IMG/VR virus record: IMGVR_UViG_3300020202_000061
Span: 248,001 to 312,000 of that record
Length of the DNA: 64,000 bases
Strand: one strand, 5' to 3'
Position 1 is the first letter of the stretch, and every line of letters begins with the position of its first letter. Positions 7,073 to 46,314 of the stretch are shown piece by piece. Both the position numbers and the translations under genes were made by a program. The notes beneath the pieces were generated by a model that did no database searches, was not told the DNA's origin, and saw only the letters and a list, made by a program, of their open reading frames with translations.

Positions 7073-7334
7073 TGTAGGTGGCATTGCCAGCGAACGTTTG
7101 AAGAGCTTCATCGAGCGCATCGAACGTCTGGAAGAAGAGAAGTCTGGAATCTCCGGTGATATCAAGGCGGTCTATGACGAAGCGAAGAGCACAGGCTTCG
7201 AGACCAAGATCATGAAGGAGATCATCAAGCGCCGTAAGAAGGATCGCAAGACTCTTCAGGAAGAAGACGCGCTGCTCGAACTCTACCAGCATGCTCTGGG
7301 TATGACCTCCGAGGGGGAAGACCCCGAAGAATAA
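7065..7334 (+). CDS. gapR: GapR (DUF2312) nucleoid-associated protein
   Basis: LKSFIERIERLEEEK..I..DIK.VY.EAK..GF..K.M..II. Confidence 0.92.
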   Translation: MTDVGGIASERLKSFIERIERLEEEKSGISGDIKAVYDEAKSTGFETKIMKEIIKRRKKDRKTLQEEDALLELYQHALGMTSEGEDPEE

Positions 7335-41286: not shown

Positions 41287-42168
41287 ATGAGAAGAGCACA
41301 AGGCGGTCAATTCGTCTACGAGGGTGGGCAAGTCATCGGCTTGGAGTTCGGCGCGGATTACGTGGCCGAACACGAATGCGGGATCGAGGACCTACAGCAC
41401 GAATTCGGTATCCCACTGAGACCGACCTGGACCGAATTCGGAATCGAGGCTCGTCGTATCACCAATGTCCCGGAACGTCTGTCCTTGCTGGACTGGGACG
41501 CGAGGGGGACGATGCATCGAGGCATCATCTTCGACGACTACCGCTCCTACAAGCATCGCCTGGACAAGGCTCAGATCGATTCCCTGCAACTGTCCGACCC
41601 CAAGGACAACTGGTGGAGGAACTCGCCTCCGCCGGAATCCCGATTGATCACGGCTTGGAAACGAAATTCGTTTGGATTTCTCGTTCATACCGAAACGCTA
41701 GGTCGGGACATCCTCGCAATCAGTGATCTCTACGACGCGTTCCTGACCATGGACCTTGCCATGTGGGCCAGTGGTAACCAACTCAGCGGCTCCATGCTCC
41801 GTGGGGGTCTGGTCCTGGCCATCGTGAGTCGAGTGCCCGAGAAGTTTCGCGAACACCTAAAGGATCAGGATCAGAACCAACTCGCCCTGGATGAGGCCGC
41901 GCACCTGACCGGTCTGGTCCAACGTGTGAATGAGGCCCGAGGGCAGCGTCAATGGCCGGATTGGTCACCATTCGCCCATTTCTCACTACGCCCTGCATGG
42001 GTTGCGCAGAAGCAATCCGCACTGAACGGAGCCGAAACCACCTACCCGGTGTGTTTCTGGTTGAATCCGCTCGATCAGAAAAACCAGAAGGCCGGATACT
42101 ACACAGTGGAGCAACTCGATGAGTGGCTTGCCGGTCGTGGTCCGGTCTACAGAGAGGTCACCCAGTGA
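41287..42168 (+). CDS. conserved phage hypothetical protein
   Basis: GADY.AEHE.GI, FWLNP..Q, G..TVE.L..W..G.GP. Confidence 0.8.
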   Translation: MRRAQGGQFVYEGGQVIGLEFGADYVAEHECGIEDLQHEFGIPLRPTWTEFGIEARRITNVPERLSLLDWDARGTMHRGIIFDDYRSYKHRLDKAQIDSLQLSDPKDNWWRNSPPPESRLITAWKRNSFGFLVHTETLGRDILAISDLYDAFLTMDLAMWASGNQLSGSMLRGGLVLAIVSRVPEKFREHLKDQDQNQLALDEAAHLTGLVQRVNEARGQRQWPDWSPFAHFSLRPAWVAQKQSALNGAETTYPVCFWLNPLDQKNQKAGYYTVEQLDEWLAGRGPVYREVTQ

Positions 42169-42632
42169 AGGTTGAAGTCATCCACGAGGACAAGTTTTGG
42201 ATCGAGCTACCCACCCGTGACGGTAATGTCCGAGTGGATGCCATGGCTCTGTTCGAGGACCTACCGAATGTTCCGGCCGGTCAGAAGCGTCAGGAGTGGA
42301 CCACGAAGAACTTCCTCGATGACGAGCAACTGTACGCGTTGGATCAGAATGGTATTATCGAGTGGTCTGAATATTCCTGCACGTGTCGTCGTGGCCTCTG
42401 GTTCGACATGTTCCTGCGGGACCTCGGCAATGCCCTGCGCGAGAAGCGCAACCTCCACACTCATGATGGGGGGCCGAACGATTTCACCAACGCCGTGCAC
42501 TGTCTGATCGTGAGCATGATCGAGCGCGGTGTGGATGAGAAGGAACCCTGGTTCGGACAGGACTTCCTGCACGTGCAGAAGCTGCTCGAATCCATGGGTC
42601 GCCCCTGTAAGGTTGAGGAGCGCACCGAGTGA
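42165..42632 (+). CDS. hypothetical protein
   Basis: GTGA coupling. Confidence 0.7.
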   Translation: MKVEVIHEDKFWIELPTRDGNVRVDAMALFEDLPNVPAGQKRQEWTTKNFLDDEQLYALDQNGIIEWSEYSCTCRRGLWFDMFLRDLGNALREKRNLHTHDGGPNDFTNAVHCLIVSMIERGVDEKEPWFGQDFLHVQKLLESMGRPCKVEERTE

Positions 42633-42886
42633 AGTTCTACGATCCCATCCGAGAGAAGCCCAAGGTGTCTGAGTGGCATCGCGTGTTTGCGTGGTTGCCC
42701 ATCCGCATCCAGGATTATTGGGTCTGGATGGAAACCTACGAGCAACGTCTGTGTTCGTTCAGGAAACCCGATCATTACTCCACCACGTATTGGTGGGAAT
42801 TCCGCACCGTCGTGAAACCCTACGCGACCAGCCAGCCGAGGGTAATCGTCACGTCTGGTCCTTCCCAGGAATGCAGTGATTTCTGA
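42629..42886 (+). CDS. hypothetical protein
   Basis: WHR.FAWLP....WVW.E motif. Confidence 0.7.
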   Translation: MKFYDPIREKPKVSEWHRVFAWLPIRIQDYWVWMETYEQRLCSFRKPDHYSTTYWWEFRTVVKPYATSQPRVIVTSGPSQECSDF

Positions 42887-43224
42887 TGCTGGTAAACCTG
42901 ATCGATGCGCGGTCGAATCGCTACGATGTCCATTGTGATGCGGAGCTTCGACCATCCTGGTTGGACAACGGATTGCCCGGCGCAACGCAATTCCCGGTGA
43001 TCCGACCGAACACGGACATGGCCAAGCCCATGTTGTCTCTGCACATGCCCAACACCTGCTTGATCGAGATCATCAACCTCTGCCAGACCCTGGGATTTCC
43101 GGTCACCGCATATCTCTATGATCGGGGAACTCAGACCCGAATCCAGACCGAATACAAGCAGGTCGAAACCCTTCTGGAGCAGACAACCACAGAGAAAATC
43201 AACGCTCCAGAAAAAACCTCTTGA
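42886..43224 (+). CDS. hypothetical protein
   Basis: TGATG coupling. Confidence 0.7.
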   Translation: MLVNLIDARSNRYDVHCDAELRPSWLDNGLPGATQFPVIRPNTDMAKPMLSLHMPNTCLIEIINLCQTLGFPVTAYLYDRGTQTRIQTEYKQVETLLEQTTTEKINAPEKTS

Positions 43225-43249
43225 CTTCCCGAACGGTTTCCCCTAAATA
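43221..43249 (+). promoter_or_regulatory. promoter of the Arg/Lys tRNA cluster
   Basis: TTGACT-N17-TAAATA. Confidence 0.75.
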
Positions 43250-43343
43250 CCCATCACAAGCGGTGCCCAGCGGAGATGGTTGGGAGTAATTAAATGGTGA
43301 GTAATCATCAGCCGCTTCAACTTTTGAGGAACGAGTTACCACA

Positions 43344-43382
43344 ATGACCCTGATTCGACGCAAACGAAAGATTAGCGCCTAA
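43344..43382 (+). CDS. candidate leader peptide MTLIRRKRKISA
   Basis: GAGGA SD; codons CGA CGC AAA CGA AAG; followed by alternative hairpins. Confidence 0.55.
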   Translation: MTLIRRKRKISA

Positions 43383-43491
43383 TCACTCCGTCAGTCCACG
43401 GAGTGGTTCTAGGCTCCGTGGGTAATGGTACTCTCCCTAACTCCCACCTAAATCTGAGATAGGACGCCCCCACAAGGGGTTGTTGCTGTTT

Positions 43492-43568
43492 GTTCCCGTA
43501 GCTCAACTGGATAGAGCACCAGACTACGAATCTGGCGGTTGGGGGTTCGACTCCCTCCGGGAACGCCA
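43492..43568 (+). tRNA. tRNA-Arg(ACG)
   Basis: Loop CTACGAA, CCA. Confidence 0.95.
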
Positions 43569-43587
43569 CAGCACCTATCGACCACAT

Positions 43588-43664
43588 GATCCTGTAGCTC
43601 ATCGGACAAGAGCGCCGTCGTGCGAAGGCGGAGGTAGTGGGTTCGATTCCCACCTGGATCGCCA
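43588..43664 (+). tRNA. tRNA-Arg(GCG)
   Basis: Stem CCGTC/GGCGG, loop GTGCGAA, CCA. Confidence 0.9.
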
Positions 43665-43674
43665 AGTAAACCGA

Positions 43675-43750
43675 GACCCAGTAGCTCAATGGAGAGAGCA
43701 CCGTCGTTCGAAGGCGGGAGATAGAGGTTCAAGTCCTCTTTGGGTCGCTA
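43675..43750 (+). tRNA. tRNA-Arg(TCG)
   Basis: Stem CCGTC/GGCGG, loop GTTCGAA; 3' end CTA. Confidence 0.9.
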
Positions 43751-43765
43751 ACGAGGAATAGTCCC

Positions 43766-43981
43766 GTGTACAACATCAAGGAGATGGTCAAAGACAAACG
43801 CGTGAAGTTCGATTTCTACAGGGCCGGAGAACTCTGGTACATCACGGAGTGTGGCTTCCGCTTTCCGGTTCCGATCAGCGACACCGGAGATGCGGTGTTC
43901 AAGTCGGAGGATAAGGCGATCTTGTTCATGCGTTGGATCAGAAAGCACGTCGCGTCGTGTGAGGAAGGCGCGAAAGGGTAA
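43766..43981 (+). CDS. conserved phage protein within the tRNA cluster
   Basis: F..YR.G.LWY....F.FPVPI.DTGDA.F...DKA..FMRWIRK. Confidence 0.8.
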   Translation: MYNIKEMVKDKRVKFDFYRAGELWYITECGFRFPVPISDTGDAVFKSEDKAILFMRWIRKHVASCEEGAKG

Positions 43982-43988
43982 TTGGAGT

Positions 43989-44063
43989 GGGCCGGTAGCT
44001 CAGAGGCAGAGCAGCATCCTCTTAAGTTGACGGTCGTGGGTTCGATTCCCACCCGGCCCTCCA
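43989..44063 (+). tRNA. tRNA-Lys(CTT)
   Basis: Loop CTCTTAA, weak anticodon stem, U73, CCA. Confidence 0.85.
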
Positions 44064-44068
44064 AATTC

Positions 44069-44144
44069 GCCAGATTACAGTTTAGTGGTAGAACACGCGG
44101 CCGATAACCGTGGAGCGGGGGTTCGATTCCCTCATCTGGCACCA
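44069..44144 (+). tRNA. atypical tRNA-Ile(GAT) with C33
   Basis: Loop CCGATAA, 4-nt acceptor/D connector, CCA. Confidence 0.75.
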
Positions 44145-44145
44145 A

Positions 44146-44228
44146 GGGCACGGAGCTTTAGAGCCGACAGGAAAGGCAAGAGACTCTTACTCTCCCAGCA
44201 TGGGGTTCGACTCCTCCCGTGCCCGCCA
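44146..44228 (+). tRNA. 8/4-fold tRNA-like RNA, anticodon CTT
   Basis: Acceptor GGGCACGG/CCGTGCCC, 9-nt connector, D-loop GACAGGAAA, loop CTCTTAC, G73, CCA. Confidence 0.7.
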
Positions 44229-44229
44229 A

Positions 44230-44304
44230 GGTGGATTCTGTCTAATGGTAGGACGCGCGCCTGATGAGCGTGAAGTAGAGGTTCGATTCCTCTATCCACC
44301 ACCA
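44230..44304 (+). tRNA. atypical tRNA-Ile(GAT) with G37
   Basis: Loop CTGATGA, 3-nt connector, CCA. Confidence 0.8.
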
Positions 44305-44305
44305 A

Positions 44306-44381
44306 GGACCTGTAGCTGAGAGGTTTAGCGGCTGGCTTTTACCCAGCGTCAACGGGAGTTCGATTCTCTCCAGGTCCACCC
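44306..44381 (+). tRNA. tRNA-Lys(TTT)
   Basis: Stem GCTGG/CCAGC, loop CTTTTAC; 3' end CCC(A). Confidence 0.88.
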
Positions 44382-44395
44382 AGTTTCCCAGTAAT

Positions 44396-44479
44396 GGGCC
44401 GCGAGAGTATAGCAGTACAGGAATCTGCACCGGGCTTTTAATCCGGCCTCAAGGGGTTCGACTCCTCCGTGGCTCGCCA
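44396..44479 (+). tRNA. 8/4-fold tRNA-like RNA with irregular anticodon loop (TTA-like)
   Basis: Acceptor GGGCCGCG/CGTGGCTC, 8-nt connector, D-loop TACAGGAAT, CCGG-GCTTTAAT-CCGG, G73, CCA. Confidence 0.65.
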
Positions 44480-44483
44480 ATTG

Positions 44484-44527
44484 AAAAACCCCCGAAGTTT
44501 CCCATCTTGGAAACACGGGGGTTTTCT
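44484..44527 (+). terminator. terminator ending the tRNA cluster
   Basis: AAAACCCCCG...GTTTCC-CATCTT-GGAAAC...CGGGGGTTTT. Confidence 0.7.
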
Positions 44528-44528
44528 C

Positions 44529-44852
44529 ATGACCTGGAAAACATTTTGGATTTGCATGACCGTTTGTGTCTGCGGCGTGCTCGGAGTGACTGCGTGGACT
44601 ATAAGGGCAGAGCGTTCTGACCCGGTGGAGCAGAACGTGAAATGCCTCAACGTAATGGATCAACTCGACTCACTCGCCCAACAGGGTCAGCGAAAGATCG
44701 TCATGTTCCAGATCGGCAAACCCATGACCGACGTGGAGATGATCGTGGGCGATCCCGAGGAGGGCGACTGGACCCGCGTAATCGTGCACCAGGATGCGTC
44801 CGCGTGTATTGTCGAGTCGGGGAGGGGTTTGCTTTTGCCAACCCCAGAATAA
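44529..44852 (+). CDS. secreted or membrane-anchored hypothetical protein
   Basis: Signal-like N-terminus; G.WT....AC.V.SG. Confidence 0.7.
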   Translation: MTWKTFWICMTVCVCGVLGVTAWTIRAERSDPVEQNVKCLNVMDQLDSLAQQGQRKIVMFQIGKPMTDVEMIVGDPEEGDWTRVIVHQDASACIVESGRGLLLPTPE

Positions 44853-44891
44853 AGCCTTGACAGAACTCCGGGGAATCCCCATAATTCAGGC

Positions 44892-44969
44892 GTCCTCGTA
44901 GCTCAATTGGATCAGAGCGTTACTTTCCGAAGGTAGAGGTTGTGGGTTCGAGCCCCGCCGAGGACGCCA
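44892..44969 (+). tRNA. tRNA-Arg(CCG)
   Basis: Loop TTCCGAA, CCA; own promoter TTGACA-N17-CATAAT at 44857. Confidence 0.92.
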
Positions 44970-44970
44970 A

Positions 44971-45294
44971 ATGATCAAGTTGATTCTCACCTGCGGCGCA
45001 TGCCCCGAACAGTATGACGCATTCCTGGGCGAAGAGCGCGTAGGTTACCTCCGTCTGCGCCATGGCCGTTTCTACGTGGAATGCCCGGACTCGGGCGGTC
45101 TGCGCGTGTATGAGGCCACACCCAAGGGCGATGGCCTCTTCGACTCGGACGAGCGCGACTATTATCTGGCCCACGCCGTGGCCGCCATCGAGGGCTGGAT
45201 TGCCAGCGGCAAACCGACCCAGATCGGACAGCCCCCGCGCCCGAACGTGCAGTATGAGATCGTGGGTGTTGCTGAGGAATGGGGCATCTATTGA
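44971..45294 (+). CDS. conserved phage hypothetical protein
   Basis: TC.ACPEQYD...VGYLRLRHG...GDG.F...ER. Confidence 0.85.
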   Translation: MIKLILTCGACPEQYDAFLGEERVGYLRLRHGRFYVECPDSGGLRVYEATPKGDGLFDSDERDYYLAHAVAAIEGWIASGKPTQIGQPPRPNVQYEIVGVAEEWGIY

Positions 45295-45521
45295 TGACCT
45301 GGGCAAATCGACTTGGTATTCCAACCGCAGTGATTCTGTTCCTGTTAGCGCAGTGGGCCAACTACGATTACCTGCACGATGTACCGGTCTCGCATTGGGG
45401 CGCGATCAACGGGTGGTTCGTCCTGATTTACACGACCATCGCATTTCCTGGATTTGGGTATCTAATGCTCGGTCTGCTTGGACACTGCATTGACCTTTAC
45501 CTACAAAGGAAATCCAAATGA
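45294..45521 (+). CDS. small membrane protein
   Basis: 2 TM; TGATG coupling. Confidence 0.7.
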   Translation: MTWANRLGIPTAVILFLLAQWANYDYLHDVPVSHWGAINGWFVLIYTTIAFPGFGYLMLGLLGHCIDLYLQRKSK

Positions 45522-45754
45522 TGTGGTTCCGTGATAGCCTCTCAGCCATCGGGTTTGGTGCTGGTCTGGGTCTGAGCATCATCATGGTTTCTCTGATCTA
45601 CCCGCAGATTCCACAGGGATCACCGGATGAGATTCGTCCCCAACTGGTTCTGACCATGGTCGCTCTCGCCGTGGGTCCGGCTATCGTCCTGAGCATCACC
45701 GGATGGTTTTTGGGCTGGATCGGGGACAAGCTCCTGGGTCTATTCACGCGATGA
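45518..45754 (+). CDS. small membrane protein
   Basis: 2 TM. Confidence 0.7.
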   Translation: MMWFRDSLSAIGFGAGLGLSIIMVSLIYPQIPQGSPDEIRPQLVLTMVALAVGPAIVLSITGWFLGWIGDKLLGLFTR

Positions 45755-46314
45755 GAATCTACACGATCAAAGAGGTTCCAGTCACCCAGGAGCACGGAAA
45801 CTGGCATCGAGTTTTCCATATCAGTTTCAACGAGGTCTCGATCCCCAATTATGGTGAATTCGACGACTGGCTTCGTCGTGTTGTCGCGGCCAAGCGTGAT
45901 GGCGGCATCATAGGTCCGATGGATTACTACTATGTGCTGCTGGCCCACTATCAGGGTTGGGTTTCCTGCAATGGATATTCGGGATCATTAGGTGATAGCG
46001 GACCTCGCTTGACCCATTACGAACTTCGCTGTCACCAACCACTGGCTGAGTTGTTCCTCCAGGTCTACTCACTTCCACAGGAAGAGTATGATCGGAATAT
46101 CAAATACCTCAGGGATCGAGAGAATCGTGGTCGTGGATATTTTGACACCAACGAGGAGGTATTCTCATACGGTGATGTGGAGAAACTCGTGGCCGCCCAT
46201 CGTGGGGAAATCCGAACCCTGGAGGAACAGCGTGCGGATTACGAAGCGGCCGAGAAGATTCGCCGCAAAAACGCTCGAAAACCCCGCAAAAAATCCCGTA
46301 GACAATCCCGATAA
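45751..46314 (+). CDS. hypothetical protein
   Basis: ATGA coupling. Confidence 0.7.
   Translation: MRIYTIKEVPVTQEHGNWHRVFHISFNEVSIPNYGEFDDWLRRVVAAKRDGGIIGPMDYYYVLLAHYQGWVSCNGYSGSLGDSGPRLTHYELRCHQPLAELFLQVYSLPQEEYDRNIKYLRDRENRGRGYFDTNEEVFSYGDVEKLVAAHRGEIRTLEEQRADYEAAEKIRRKNARKPRKKSRRQSR

Follow-up and report, generated by a model that had tools for sequence, protein, structure and literature searches.

Why does one tRNA operon of a jumbo phage place its promoter almost a quarter of a kilobase upstream of the first tRNA, and is the intervening leader read by ribosomes? The locus lies within a 64,000-nucleotide stretch (positions 248,001 to 312,000 of IMG/VR record IMGVR_UViG_3300020202_000061), hereafter referred to as the window, and all parts of the leader and operon are on its + strand. 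A first-pass annotation had proposed that the leader is a ribosome-mediated attenuator, in which a 12-codon ORF with codons matching the downstream Arg, Lys and Ile tRNAs, a pair of mutually exclusive stems, a C-rich tract pairing with an upstream TGGGAGT, and a short hairpin with a T-rich run together sense the loss of host Arg/Lys tRNA, through anticodon-nuclease defence or starvation, and switch on replacement tRNAs. All of the features it described were found at the positions it had given, and its observation is confirmed. Its interpretation was only partly supported.

A codon-matched ORF ahead of the tRNA operon

The promoter (43220-43249, CTTGAC-N18-TAAATA; inferred start near 43256) belongs to a tRNA-associated class. 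The motif CTTGAY-N18-TAAATA occurs 8 times in 64 kb against 0.21 expected, every copy precedes a tRNA cluster, and the promoter is conserved in relatives. The distance from the end of the -10 element to the first tRNA is 5-23 nt for six of these promoters, 138 nt for the one at 71, where an odd tRNA-like element comes first, and 242 nt here, making this the only one of the eight with a long untranslated-looking leader. ARAGORN and Rfam identified Arg ACG, GCG and UCG, Lys CUU and UUU, and Ile GAU in the operon, which comprises nine Arg/Lys/Ile tRNA genes: tRNA-Arg ACG, GCG and UCG (43492-43748); tRNA-Lys CUU, an Ile GAU-like gene recognized at the Rfam level (44070-44139), an odd Lys CUU-like gene (44146-44228), Ile GAU and Lys UUU (43989-44380); and an odd Lys-like gene with a UUU anticodon loop (44396-44479), in which a compensatory change in the anticodon stem was observed. 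A 71-aa protein of unknown function (phrog_20427) is embedded in the operon (43766-43981), and a strong intrinsic terminator (44485-44527, -25 kcal/mol, then TTTT) ends it.

The leader contains a 12-codon ORF from the ATG at 43344 to the TAA at 43380-43382, with the predicted peptide MTLIRRKRKISA. An SD-like GAGGA lies at 43326-43330, within an element (43326-43343) that includes the spacer to the start codon, and this start-site context resembles that of real genes of this phage, which also have GAGGAA 14-16 nt before the ATG. The seven central codons, ATT CGA CGC AAA CGA AAG ATT (43353-43373), are all read by tRNAs of the operon. A run of seven cognate codons arose in 1.5e-5 of dinucleotide shuffles of the leader, and in all frames of both strands of the window (128 kb) only two runs of six or more exist, this one and one inside a gene at 7221. 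Among 76 tRNA clusters in the window and other phage loci, this leader ranked first and was the only outlier, and the other tRNA clusters of the window have no comparable leader ORF. There is no CGG codon in the ORF, and tRNA-Arg CCG has its own promoter outside the operon. Five of the seven codons are minor codons of the phage (p = 0.025 for the bias), whose major synonyms are ATC, CGT and AAG.

Conservation and predicted folding of the leader

Conservation of the ORF, of its codons and of stem covariation in related phages had been set beforehand as a test of the proposal. Five diverged phage lineages keep the ATG, frame and stop, with an in-frame 3-nt indel and one synonymous change, in codon 2, outside the core. 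Samples that hold the leader come from wastewater and sludge. A 30-nt core is identical in all lineages (30 of 30), while the adjacent 5' leader shares 6-28 of 67 positions, the sequence downstream of the stop 57-65 of 66-67 positions, and the tRNAs 77-99%. The invariance of third positions has p = 0.03 at the substitution rate of the nearby 71-aa ORF and p = 6e-4 at that of the upstream gene. However, the whole operon is about 90% identical among lineages, meaning that a 30-nt identical block is not by itself remarkable, and the core region falls into only two haplotypes, which makes the covariation evidence thin.

Two hairpins follow the ORF. The stem CACTCCGT/ACGGAGTG (43384-43405) extends to an 11-bp hairpin, H1 (43381-43408, -15.2 kcal/mol), which includes two bases of the stop codon, while CCACGGAG/CTCCGTGG (43396-43421) extends to a 10-bp hairpin, H2 (43395-43422, -17.5 kcal/mol). 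H1 and H2 are mutually exclusive, of similar stability and kept in all five lineages. Across lineages, H1 shows one A-U to G-C compensatory pair, one U-G to C-G change and one broken pair, and H2 shows one broken pair. The hairpins are placed such that a ribosome at the last codons or the stop must melt H1; H2 is favoured when a ribosome covers 43381-43394, and constrained folds switch from H1 to H2 as the modelled ribosome moves from early codons to the stop. A weak helix, H3 (43418-43447, GTGGG/CCCAC), is exclusive with H2 and encloses part of the C tract, but is invariant, so that no covariation is possible. Overall folding of the leader is not unusually stable (z-scores of -1.7 to -1.8).

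The C-rich, G-poor tract (43427-43455; G-free at 43429-43455, with 12 C and 1 G in 28 nt) is conserved and constitutes a candidate Rho entry site, although it is short for this role and 6 such tracts occur on the + strand of the window. Its conserved partner is the SD-to-start spacer: GAG..ACC (43333-43340) pairs with GGTACTCTCC (43427-43436) at the start of the tract, in a duplex of -11 to -15 kcal/mol that persists in all five lineages despite four different spacer sequences, with a fraction of 0.003-0.06 of shuffles being as stable. The spacer and H3 each sequester part of the tract in the predicted folds, and in lineage A, to which the window belongs, TGGGAGT is added to these, without available covariation. 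TGGGAGT (43281-43287), complementary to 43440-43446, lies in a lineage-A insertion within a hypervariable 5' stem-loop (43258-43317) closed by AAGCGG/CCGCTT, and each lineage has a different 5' hairpin. The pairing of TGGGAGT with ACTCCCA proposed in the first-pass annotation is therefore rejected as a conserved feature; however, the single core substitution of lineage A (43441 C) completes that helix, and it may be a real lineage-specific addition.

A classical terminator/antiterminator switch of the trp type was not supported. The pre-tRNA hairpin (43466-43480), followed by an interrupted U-rich tail to 43491 and flagged as terminator-like, is weak (core -7.8 kcal/mol), lies 44 nt beyond the helix chain, overlaps no alternative helix, forms in every modelled ribosome state and is replaced by an unrelated hairpin in lineage E; it could be a weak terminator-like element or a processing/stability hairpin. 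A search for a conserved antiterminator against its 5' arm found best partners that differ between lineages, and a search downstream for a conserved partner of the ORF core found only A-rich to U-rich pairing with the pre-tRNA tail, in different registers.

Rfam (release 15), which includes amino-acid leaders and T-boxes, gave no match in 43250-43491 at E up to 10, found only tRNAs over 42000-46000 at a permissive threshold, and gave none for the module in relatives described below. DNA similarity to 50,697 phage records matched only the tRNAs. Exact and degenerate ORF patterns returned only the window's own contig from viral contigs, only itself plus 4 chance hits from metagenome contigs, and nothing from 185,579 genomes, indicating that the leader was not captured from a sequenced host; a scan with the promoter pattern likewise found only the window's own contig plus chance hits. 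An RNA-library contig covering 43329-43466 may be DNA carry-over and gave no usable evidence of transcription.

In more distant phages we found a canonical attenuator (loci L009, L088, L089, L090-L092 and L094). Here a phage promoter is followed by a small ORF of 31-35 codons, made of Thr/Lys/Val/Ile/Asn/Ala codons that mirror the downstream tRNAs, and by invariant 1:2, 2:3 and 3:4 helices including a strong GC hairpin followed by a U run. It lies upstream of an RNA ligase gene and/or Lys/Ala/Ile/Thr/Asn/Val tRNAs, and the tRNA cluster that follows contains a homologue of the same 71-aa protein; where the downstream gene is known (L009, L088, L089, L094) it is an RNA ligase. The sequence is not homologous to the leader in the window, neither an RNA ligase homologue nor a homologue of this leader peptide occurs in the window, and more distant ligase loci (L095, L096) lack the leader module.

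A putative ribosome-read sensor and its rivals

The explanation we favour, with moderate confidence, is that the 236-nt leader is probably a cis-acting, ribosome-read sensor in front of the Arg/Lys/Ile tRNA operon. What the sequence analysis establishes is a conserved 11-12-codon ORF whose seven central codons, mostly minor ones, are each decoded by tRNAs of the operon, a stop codon built into H1, competition of H1 with H2 for the same strand, and complementarity of the SD-to-start spacer to the start of a conserved C-rich tract. Translation of the ORF, any effect on readthrough, involvement of Rho and the link to anticodon nucleases or starvation are inferences. In this view, the speed at which a ribosome decodes Ile-Arg-Arg-Lys-Arg-Lys-Ile would decide which folds form while RNA polymerase is still in the leader, and would thereby set how many transcripts reach the tRNAs. 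In the preferred model, slow decoding would park a ribosome on the ORF and block new initiation, H1 would stay intact, and the bare SD spacer would pair with the C tract, allowing polymerase to read through. Fast decoding would keep the ribosome-binding site occupied; a ribosome at the stop would melt H1, H2 would form and the C tract would be exposed, with transcripts ending early by Rho loading or at the weak hairpin at 43466-43491. The result would be feedback that raises Arg/Lys/Ile tRNA output when those tRNAs are scarce, whether from codon mismatch with the host, starvation or tRNA-cleaving defences.

Of the alternatives, all of which appear unlikely, the best surviving is that the conserved core of roughly 125 nt (43323-43448) is a structured non-coding leader, acting as a processing or stability element, a protein-binding site or an sRNA released by RNase P cleavage at the first tRNA, with an incidental ORF. 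Nucleotide-level conservation does extend well beyond the ORF, the long-range helix between SD spacer and C tract closes the domain, and a hairpin sits just before the RNase P site in every lineage. On the other hand, a seven-codon cognate run inside an ATG-started ORF is very unlikely by chance, the indel is in frame, there is no Rfam match, folding is not unusually stable, and relatives use an analogous ORF in a textbook attenuator.

Slightly less likely, the ORF could encode a functional basic micropeptide (I-R-R-K-R-K-I-S-A core), for example an RNA- or tRNA-binding or anti-defence peptide co-expressed with the tRNAs, the codon match being a by-product of its Arg/Lys content. The conserved ATG, frame and stop and the in-frame indel are consistent with this, and small basic peptides in tRNA operons have a precedent in Tpr of the E. 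coli tyrT operon. However, there are no synonymous changes in nine sense codons, whereas neighbouring genes vary at 32-56% of third positions, the codons are the phage's minor ones, the flanking Ile codons also match the operon, the stop codon is embedded in a bistable hairpin pair, and the peptide is only 11-12 residues long. About equally doubtful is that the ORF is translated and matters in cis without sensing codons, the ribosome merely shielding the long leader from Rho or RNases or opening the structure for processing. The pairing of the C-rich tract with the ribosome-binding region and the long naked leader, the only one among these tRNA promoters, would fit this view, but it does not explain why the codons are exactly those of the operon's tRNAs, why minor codons are used, or why they are frozen at third positions. 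A chance ORF in a conserved spacer is very unlikely: short ORFs are common and only two core haplotypes exist, but the codon-match statistics, the third-position invariance and the conservation of start, frame and stop in five lineages speak against it.

Known attenuators and implications for phage tRNAs

The leader shares with the leader-peptide attenuators of amino-acid operons (trpL, hisL, leuL, thrL, pheL) a short ORF with a run of codons cognate to the operon's product and a stop codon abutting the first of a chain of mutually exclusive helices, the choice among which, in the modelled folds, follows ribosome position. It differs in that the product is tRNA rather than a biosynthetic enzyme, that three amino acids and six anticodons would be sampled at once, and that no intrinsic terminator is part of the helix chain. 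The pheM-pheST attenuator likewise governs a component of the decoding apparatus, phenylalanyl-tRNA synthetase, but controls a protein gene in a bacterial chromosome, senses one amino acid and has a classical terminator. Rho-dependent leader-ORF attenuators (mgtL-mgtA, corL-corA, tnaC-tnaA) combine, as this leader may, a leader ORF with regulatory codons, alternative stem-loops and a downstream C-rich, G-poor tract whose exposure could depend on the ribosome, whereas here the tract is only about 28 nt, the operon is non-coding and a role of Rho is hypothetical. T-box riboswitches couple the supply of a specific tRNA to transcription of translation-related genes, but bind uncharged tRNA directly and need no ribosome; no T-box features were found here.

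Leader-peptide attenuation is a classic mechanism for amino-acid biosynthesis genes and a few aminoacyl-tRNA synthetase or transport genes, but is not known for tRNA genes or in phages, and literature searches found no such description. A broader reading, which the evidence permits but which we regard as tentative and less likely than not, is that some large phages gate their tRNA genes, and in relatives an RNA ligase gene as well, with leader-peptide attenuators whose regulatory codons are exactly those read by the tRNAs they control. The phage would then measure the decoding capacity of the host cell directly, including loss of Lys/Arg/Asn/Thr tRNAs to anticodon nucleases, and respond by making replacement tRNAs and possibly tRNA-repair enzyme, with the leader in the window being a compact, possibly Rho-dependent, version of this device.

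Why phages carry tRNAs is still debated, the two main ideas being codon compensation and replacement of tRNAs destroyed by host defences (PMC10264068, PMC11464382, PMC11555353). A sensor that turns phage tRNA genes on when specific codons are decoded slowly would show that tRNA supply is actively monitored during infection, and would make it testable which stress opens the switch. The same logic appears twice in non-homologous form, in one case next to an RNA ligase gene, and phage RNA ligases are known to mend cleaved tRNA-Lys (PMC10264068), which suggests a recurrent strategy rather than a one-off.

The tRNA operon and its codon-matched leader

The window belongs to a 347.5-kb phage contig from a soil metagenome (IMGVR_UViG_3300020202_000061) that has no close relative among deposited phages, with which only its tRNAs match. 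The first-pass annotation had described a short leader ORF, two stems, a G-free C-rich tract, a TGGGAGT motif at 43281 and a hairpin with a U-rich run at 43466-43491, and this observation was confirmed, as all of its coordinates proved correct and every element was present. The ORF extends from the ATG at 43344 to the TAA at 43380-43382 and encodes MTLIRRKRKISA. Its distant promoter, at 43220, belongs to a distinct class: the motif CTTGAY-N18-TAAATA (often CTAAATACCC) occurs eight times in 64 kb against 0.21 expected (71, 3161, 19337, 20661, 23188, 27910, 32559 and 43220), each time in front of a tRNA cluster. Six of these promoters end 5-23 nt before their first tRNA, whereas the one considered here ends 242 nt before. 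The remaining promoter, at 71, ends 138 nt before tRNA-Pro at 239, and is separated from it by an odd tRNA-like element (101-180) with a good T arm and acceptor stem and a poor anticodon arm, which was missed by ARAGORN.

The operon encodes tRNA-Arg ACG, GCG and UCG, tRNA-Lys CUU and UUU, and tRNA-Ile GAU, in addition to a second Ile GAU-like gene (Rfam, 41 bits). Two non-canonical tRNA-like genes (44146-44228 and 44396-44479) have Lys anticodon loops (CUU and UUU), encoded CCA ends and unusual D regions; both are conserved across lineages, the second with a compensatory change in its anticodon stem, and they might be nuclease-resistant variants or decoys for tRNA-Lys-cleaving defences. Within the operon lies a 71-aa protein of unknown function (43766-43981; phrog_20427, no Pfam match), which is found inside tRNA clusters in many unrelated large phages (loci L009-L033 of our collection of phage loci), with 135 homologues at E <= 1e-20. 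A strong terminator ends the operon at 44485-44527. In contrast, tRNA-Arg CCG (44892) lies outside the operon, behind its own near-consensus sigma-70 promoter (TTGACA-17-CATAAT at 44857).

The seven central codons of the ORF (ATT CGA CGC AAA CGA AAG ATT, 43353-43373) are all readable by tRNAs of the operon. Four of them carry the Watson-Crick codon of one anticodon each (GCG, UCG, UUU and CUU), while ATT is read by GAU through wobble; the ACG tRNA would read CGC and CGA if its A34 is deaminated to inosine. No CGG codon is present, and the CCG tRNA is located outside the operon. A run of this length arises in 1.5e-5 of dinucleotide shuffles of the leader, and in every frame of both strands of the window only one other run of six or more exists, inside a gene. 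When 76 tRNA clusters from the window and from other tRNA-rich phage loci were scored for the same property, this leader was the single outlier, the next-best p being 0.026, and no other cluster of the window has such an ORF.

Conservation and RNA structure of the leader

Homologues of the flanking 112-aa and 71-aa genes led to four further lineages in addition to that of the window (lineage A): lineage B (locus L040), lineage C (L039, a 409-kb contig), lineage D (L006) and lineage E (L002-L004, L044 and L045). The protein encoded by the upstream gene is only 71-73% identical for lineages D and E, and at least 90% identical in lineage B. All five lineages keep the promoter, the ATG, the stop and the frame. 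Lineages A and B read ATG ACC CTG, C reads ATG ACT CTG, a synonymous change, and D and E read ATG CAG, an in-frame 3-nt indel, while the last 30 nt of the ORF are identical in all five. By contrast, the 5' leader just upstream shares only 6-28 of 67 positions, with a different 5' hairpin in each lineage, and the tRNAs share 77-99%. Third codon positions vary at 32% in the nearby 71-aa ORF, whose first 62 nt are identical in all five lineages, and at 56% in the upstream gene; nine invariant third positions therefore have p = 0.03 to 6e-4. The frozen codons are mostly the minor ones of the phage (ATT 21%, CGA 14% and AAA 25% of their families), and five or more minor codons out of seven has p = 0.025. 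Although the GAGGA located 13 nt before the ATG appears distant, genuine genes of this phage also show GAGGAA 14-16 nt upstream.

In lineages C and E an HNH endonuclease gene (phrog_2255, E 2e-33; L002:1977-2439, and after the first tRNA in L039), preceded by a 19-nt inverted repeat, is inserted right after tRNA-Arg ACG, recalling the homing endonucleases of the T4 tRNA region. A peptide deformylase gene (PF01327), another translation-related gene, sits a few genes upstream of the tRNA operon in all lineages (L002:305-769, and L041:11-481, a locus from the same phage as the window, about 2.5 kb upstream of the leader). A wastewater metatranscriptome run (X24) holds a 151-nt contig covering the ORF and hairpins (43329-43466) with 5 differences, which cannot be told apart from DNA carry-over, and DNA runs from wastewater and sludge hold lineage-C-like versions; the phage group is therefore not confined to soil.

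Two hairpins are predicted from the stop codon onwards. H1 (43381-43408, -15.2 kcal/mol) begins inside the stop codon, and H2 (43395-43422, -17.5 kcal/mol) uses the same central strand. The five lineages comprise only two core haplotypes, between which H1 shows one A-U to G-C compensatory pair, one U-G to C-G change and one broken pair, H2 shows one improved and one broken pair, and H3 (GTGGG/CCCAC) is invariant, so that covariation evidence is thin. Folds constrained by a 29-nt ribosome footprint give H1 (plus H3) when the A site is on the early Arg/Lys codons, and H2 when it is on the last codons or the stop.

The interpretation offered in the first-pass annotation, a ribosome-mediated attenuator of the tRNA operon, was supported only in part. 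The TGGGAGT sequence, proposed as the partner of the C-rich tract, sits in an insertion found only in lineage A, although the one core substitution private to that lineage (43441 C) completes this helix, and the pairing may be a real lineage-specific addition. The conserved partner of the C tract is instead the SD-to-start spacer: GAG(N1-2)ACC pairs with GGTACTC(TCC) in all five lineages, although the spacer has four different sequences, with a duplex of -11 to -15 kcal/mol and a fraction of 0.003-0.06 of shuffled spacers pairing as stably. The hairpin preceding the first tRNA is weak (core -7.8 kcal/mol, against -25 for the operon-end terminator), has an interrupted U tract, forms in every modelled ribosome state and has no conserved antiterminator. 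In lineage E it was replaced, together with the first tRNA, by unrelated sequence that again forms a hairpin. A trp-type terminator/antiterminator switch is therefore not supported, and whatever the conserved core (43323-43448) does, it does not need sequence complementarity with that hairpin.

A second leader module in more distant phages

Homologues of the 71-aa protein at 71-78% identity were followed into more distant phages, and in loci L009 (a 363-kb IMG/VR phage), L088, L089 and L090-L092 the highest-scoring stretch of cognate codons was again a small ORF upstream of the tRNAs. A further locus, L094, was found through the RNA ligase and has the same module. The layout (L009:376-1254; L088:560-830; L089:915-1150; L090:2130-2362; L094:3240-3500) comprises a TTGACA-type promoter, an ATG and 31-35 codons, of which the first 22 or so encode almost only Thr, Lys, Val, Ile, Asn and Ala; the tRNAs downstream are Lys, Ala, Ile, Thr, Asn and Val. 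The cognate-codon scores are 14 and 12, whereas the maxima in 2,000 whole-locus shuffles were 12 and 11 (p < 5e-4). Four short elements are invariant while the peptide varies within that residue set: element 1, TCAAAACCA, in codons 5-7; element 2, GGGGTTTTG, near the ORF end; element 3, AAAGCCCC; and element 4, GGGGC followed by six or seven T. L090 carries a compensatory C-G to U-A change in the terminator stem.

Judged from sequence and modelled folds, this is a canonical leader-peptide attenuator. Constrained folds behave as in a textbook example: free RNA, or a ribosome at the stop, gives helices 1:2 and 3:4, the latter being the strong terminator, and in L089 and L090 a ribosome on codons 6-10 gives the 2:3 antiterminator. 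In L009 and L088, however, the minimum-energy fold keeps the terminator. The next gene in L009, L088, L089 and L094 is an RNA ligase (PF09414; 35.2 bits in L009 and 28.3 bits in L088, against a cut-off of 27), followed by tRNAs for the same amino acids, which in L009 start 8 nt after its stop; in L090-L092 the tRNAs follow without a ligase. More distant ligase loci lack the module. The module is not in Rfam, and no paper describing it was found. In addition, a conserved element of about 150-190 nt (GGTAAGAGCAAG ... CCCCCTCCCC ...) and a GGTATAAAAT promoter-like box lie just before the first tRNA in two of these loci (L088:1868-2052; L090:2365-2560), without an Rfam match. As the module is not homologous to the leader of the window, it is an independent instance of a leader ORF mirroring the tRNA cluster.

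A possible ribosome-read sensor

What the analysis establishes is the anatomy of the leader; the regulatory function, including translation of the ORF and termination within the leader, is inferred from sequence alone. We infer that decoding speed on the seven codons sets the fold of the nascent leader, and with it the fraction of transcripts that reach the tRNAs. This general claim, a ribosome-read cis sensor of cognate decoding, we consider about as likely as not. Alternatively, the region could be a structured non-coding leader with an incidental ORF, the ORF could encode a functional basic micropeptide, or the leader could be translated without sensing; chance is the weakest of these alternatives. 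No description of an attenuator for tRNA genes, or in phage tRNA clusters, was found in the literature searched, which did not include subscription journals.

Our preferred model, which uses the conserved parts but whose particular output mechanism remains doubtful, is as follows. A ribosome stalled on the short ORF would block re-initiation and leave H1 intact, and the uncovered SD spacer would then pair with the C tract, hiding a candidate Rho entry site, so that polymerase continues. Rapid decoding, in this view, would keep the ribosome-binding site occupied and put a ribosome on the stop, whereupon H1 melts, H2 forms and the C tract is exposed, and transcripts would then end before or at the first tRNA. 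Such a device would resemble mgtL-mgtA more than trpL, and would give the sensible sign, with more tRNA made by the phage when tRNA is short.
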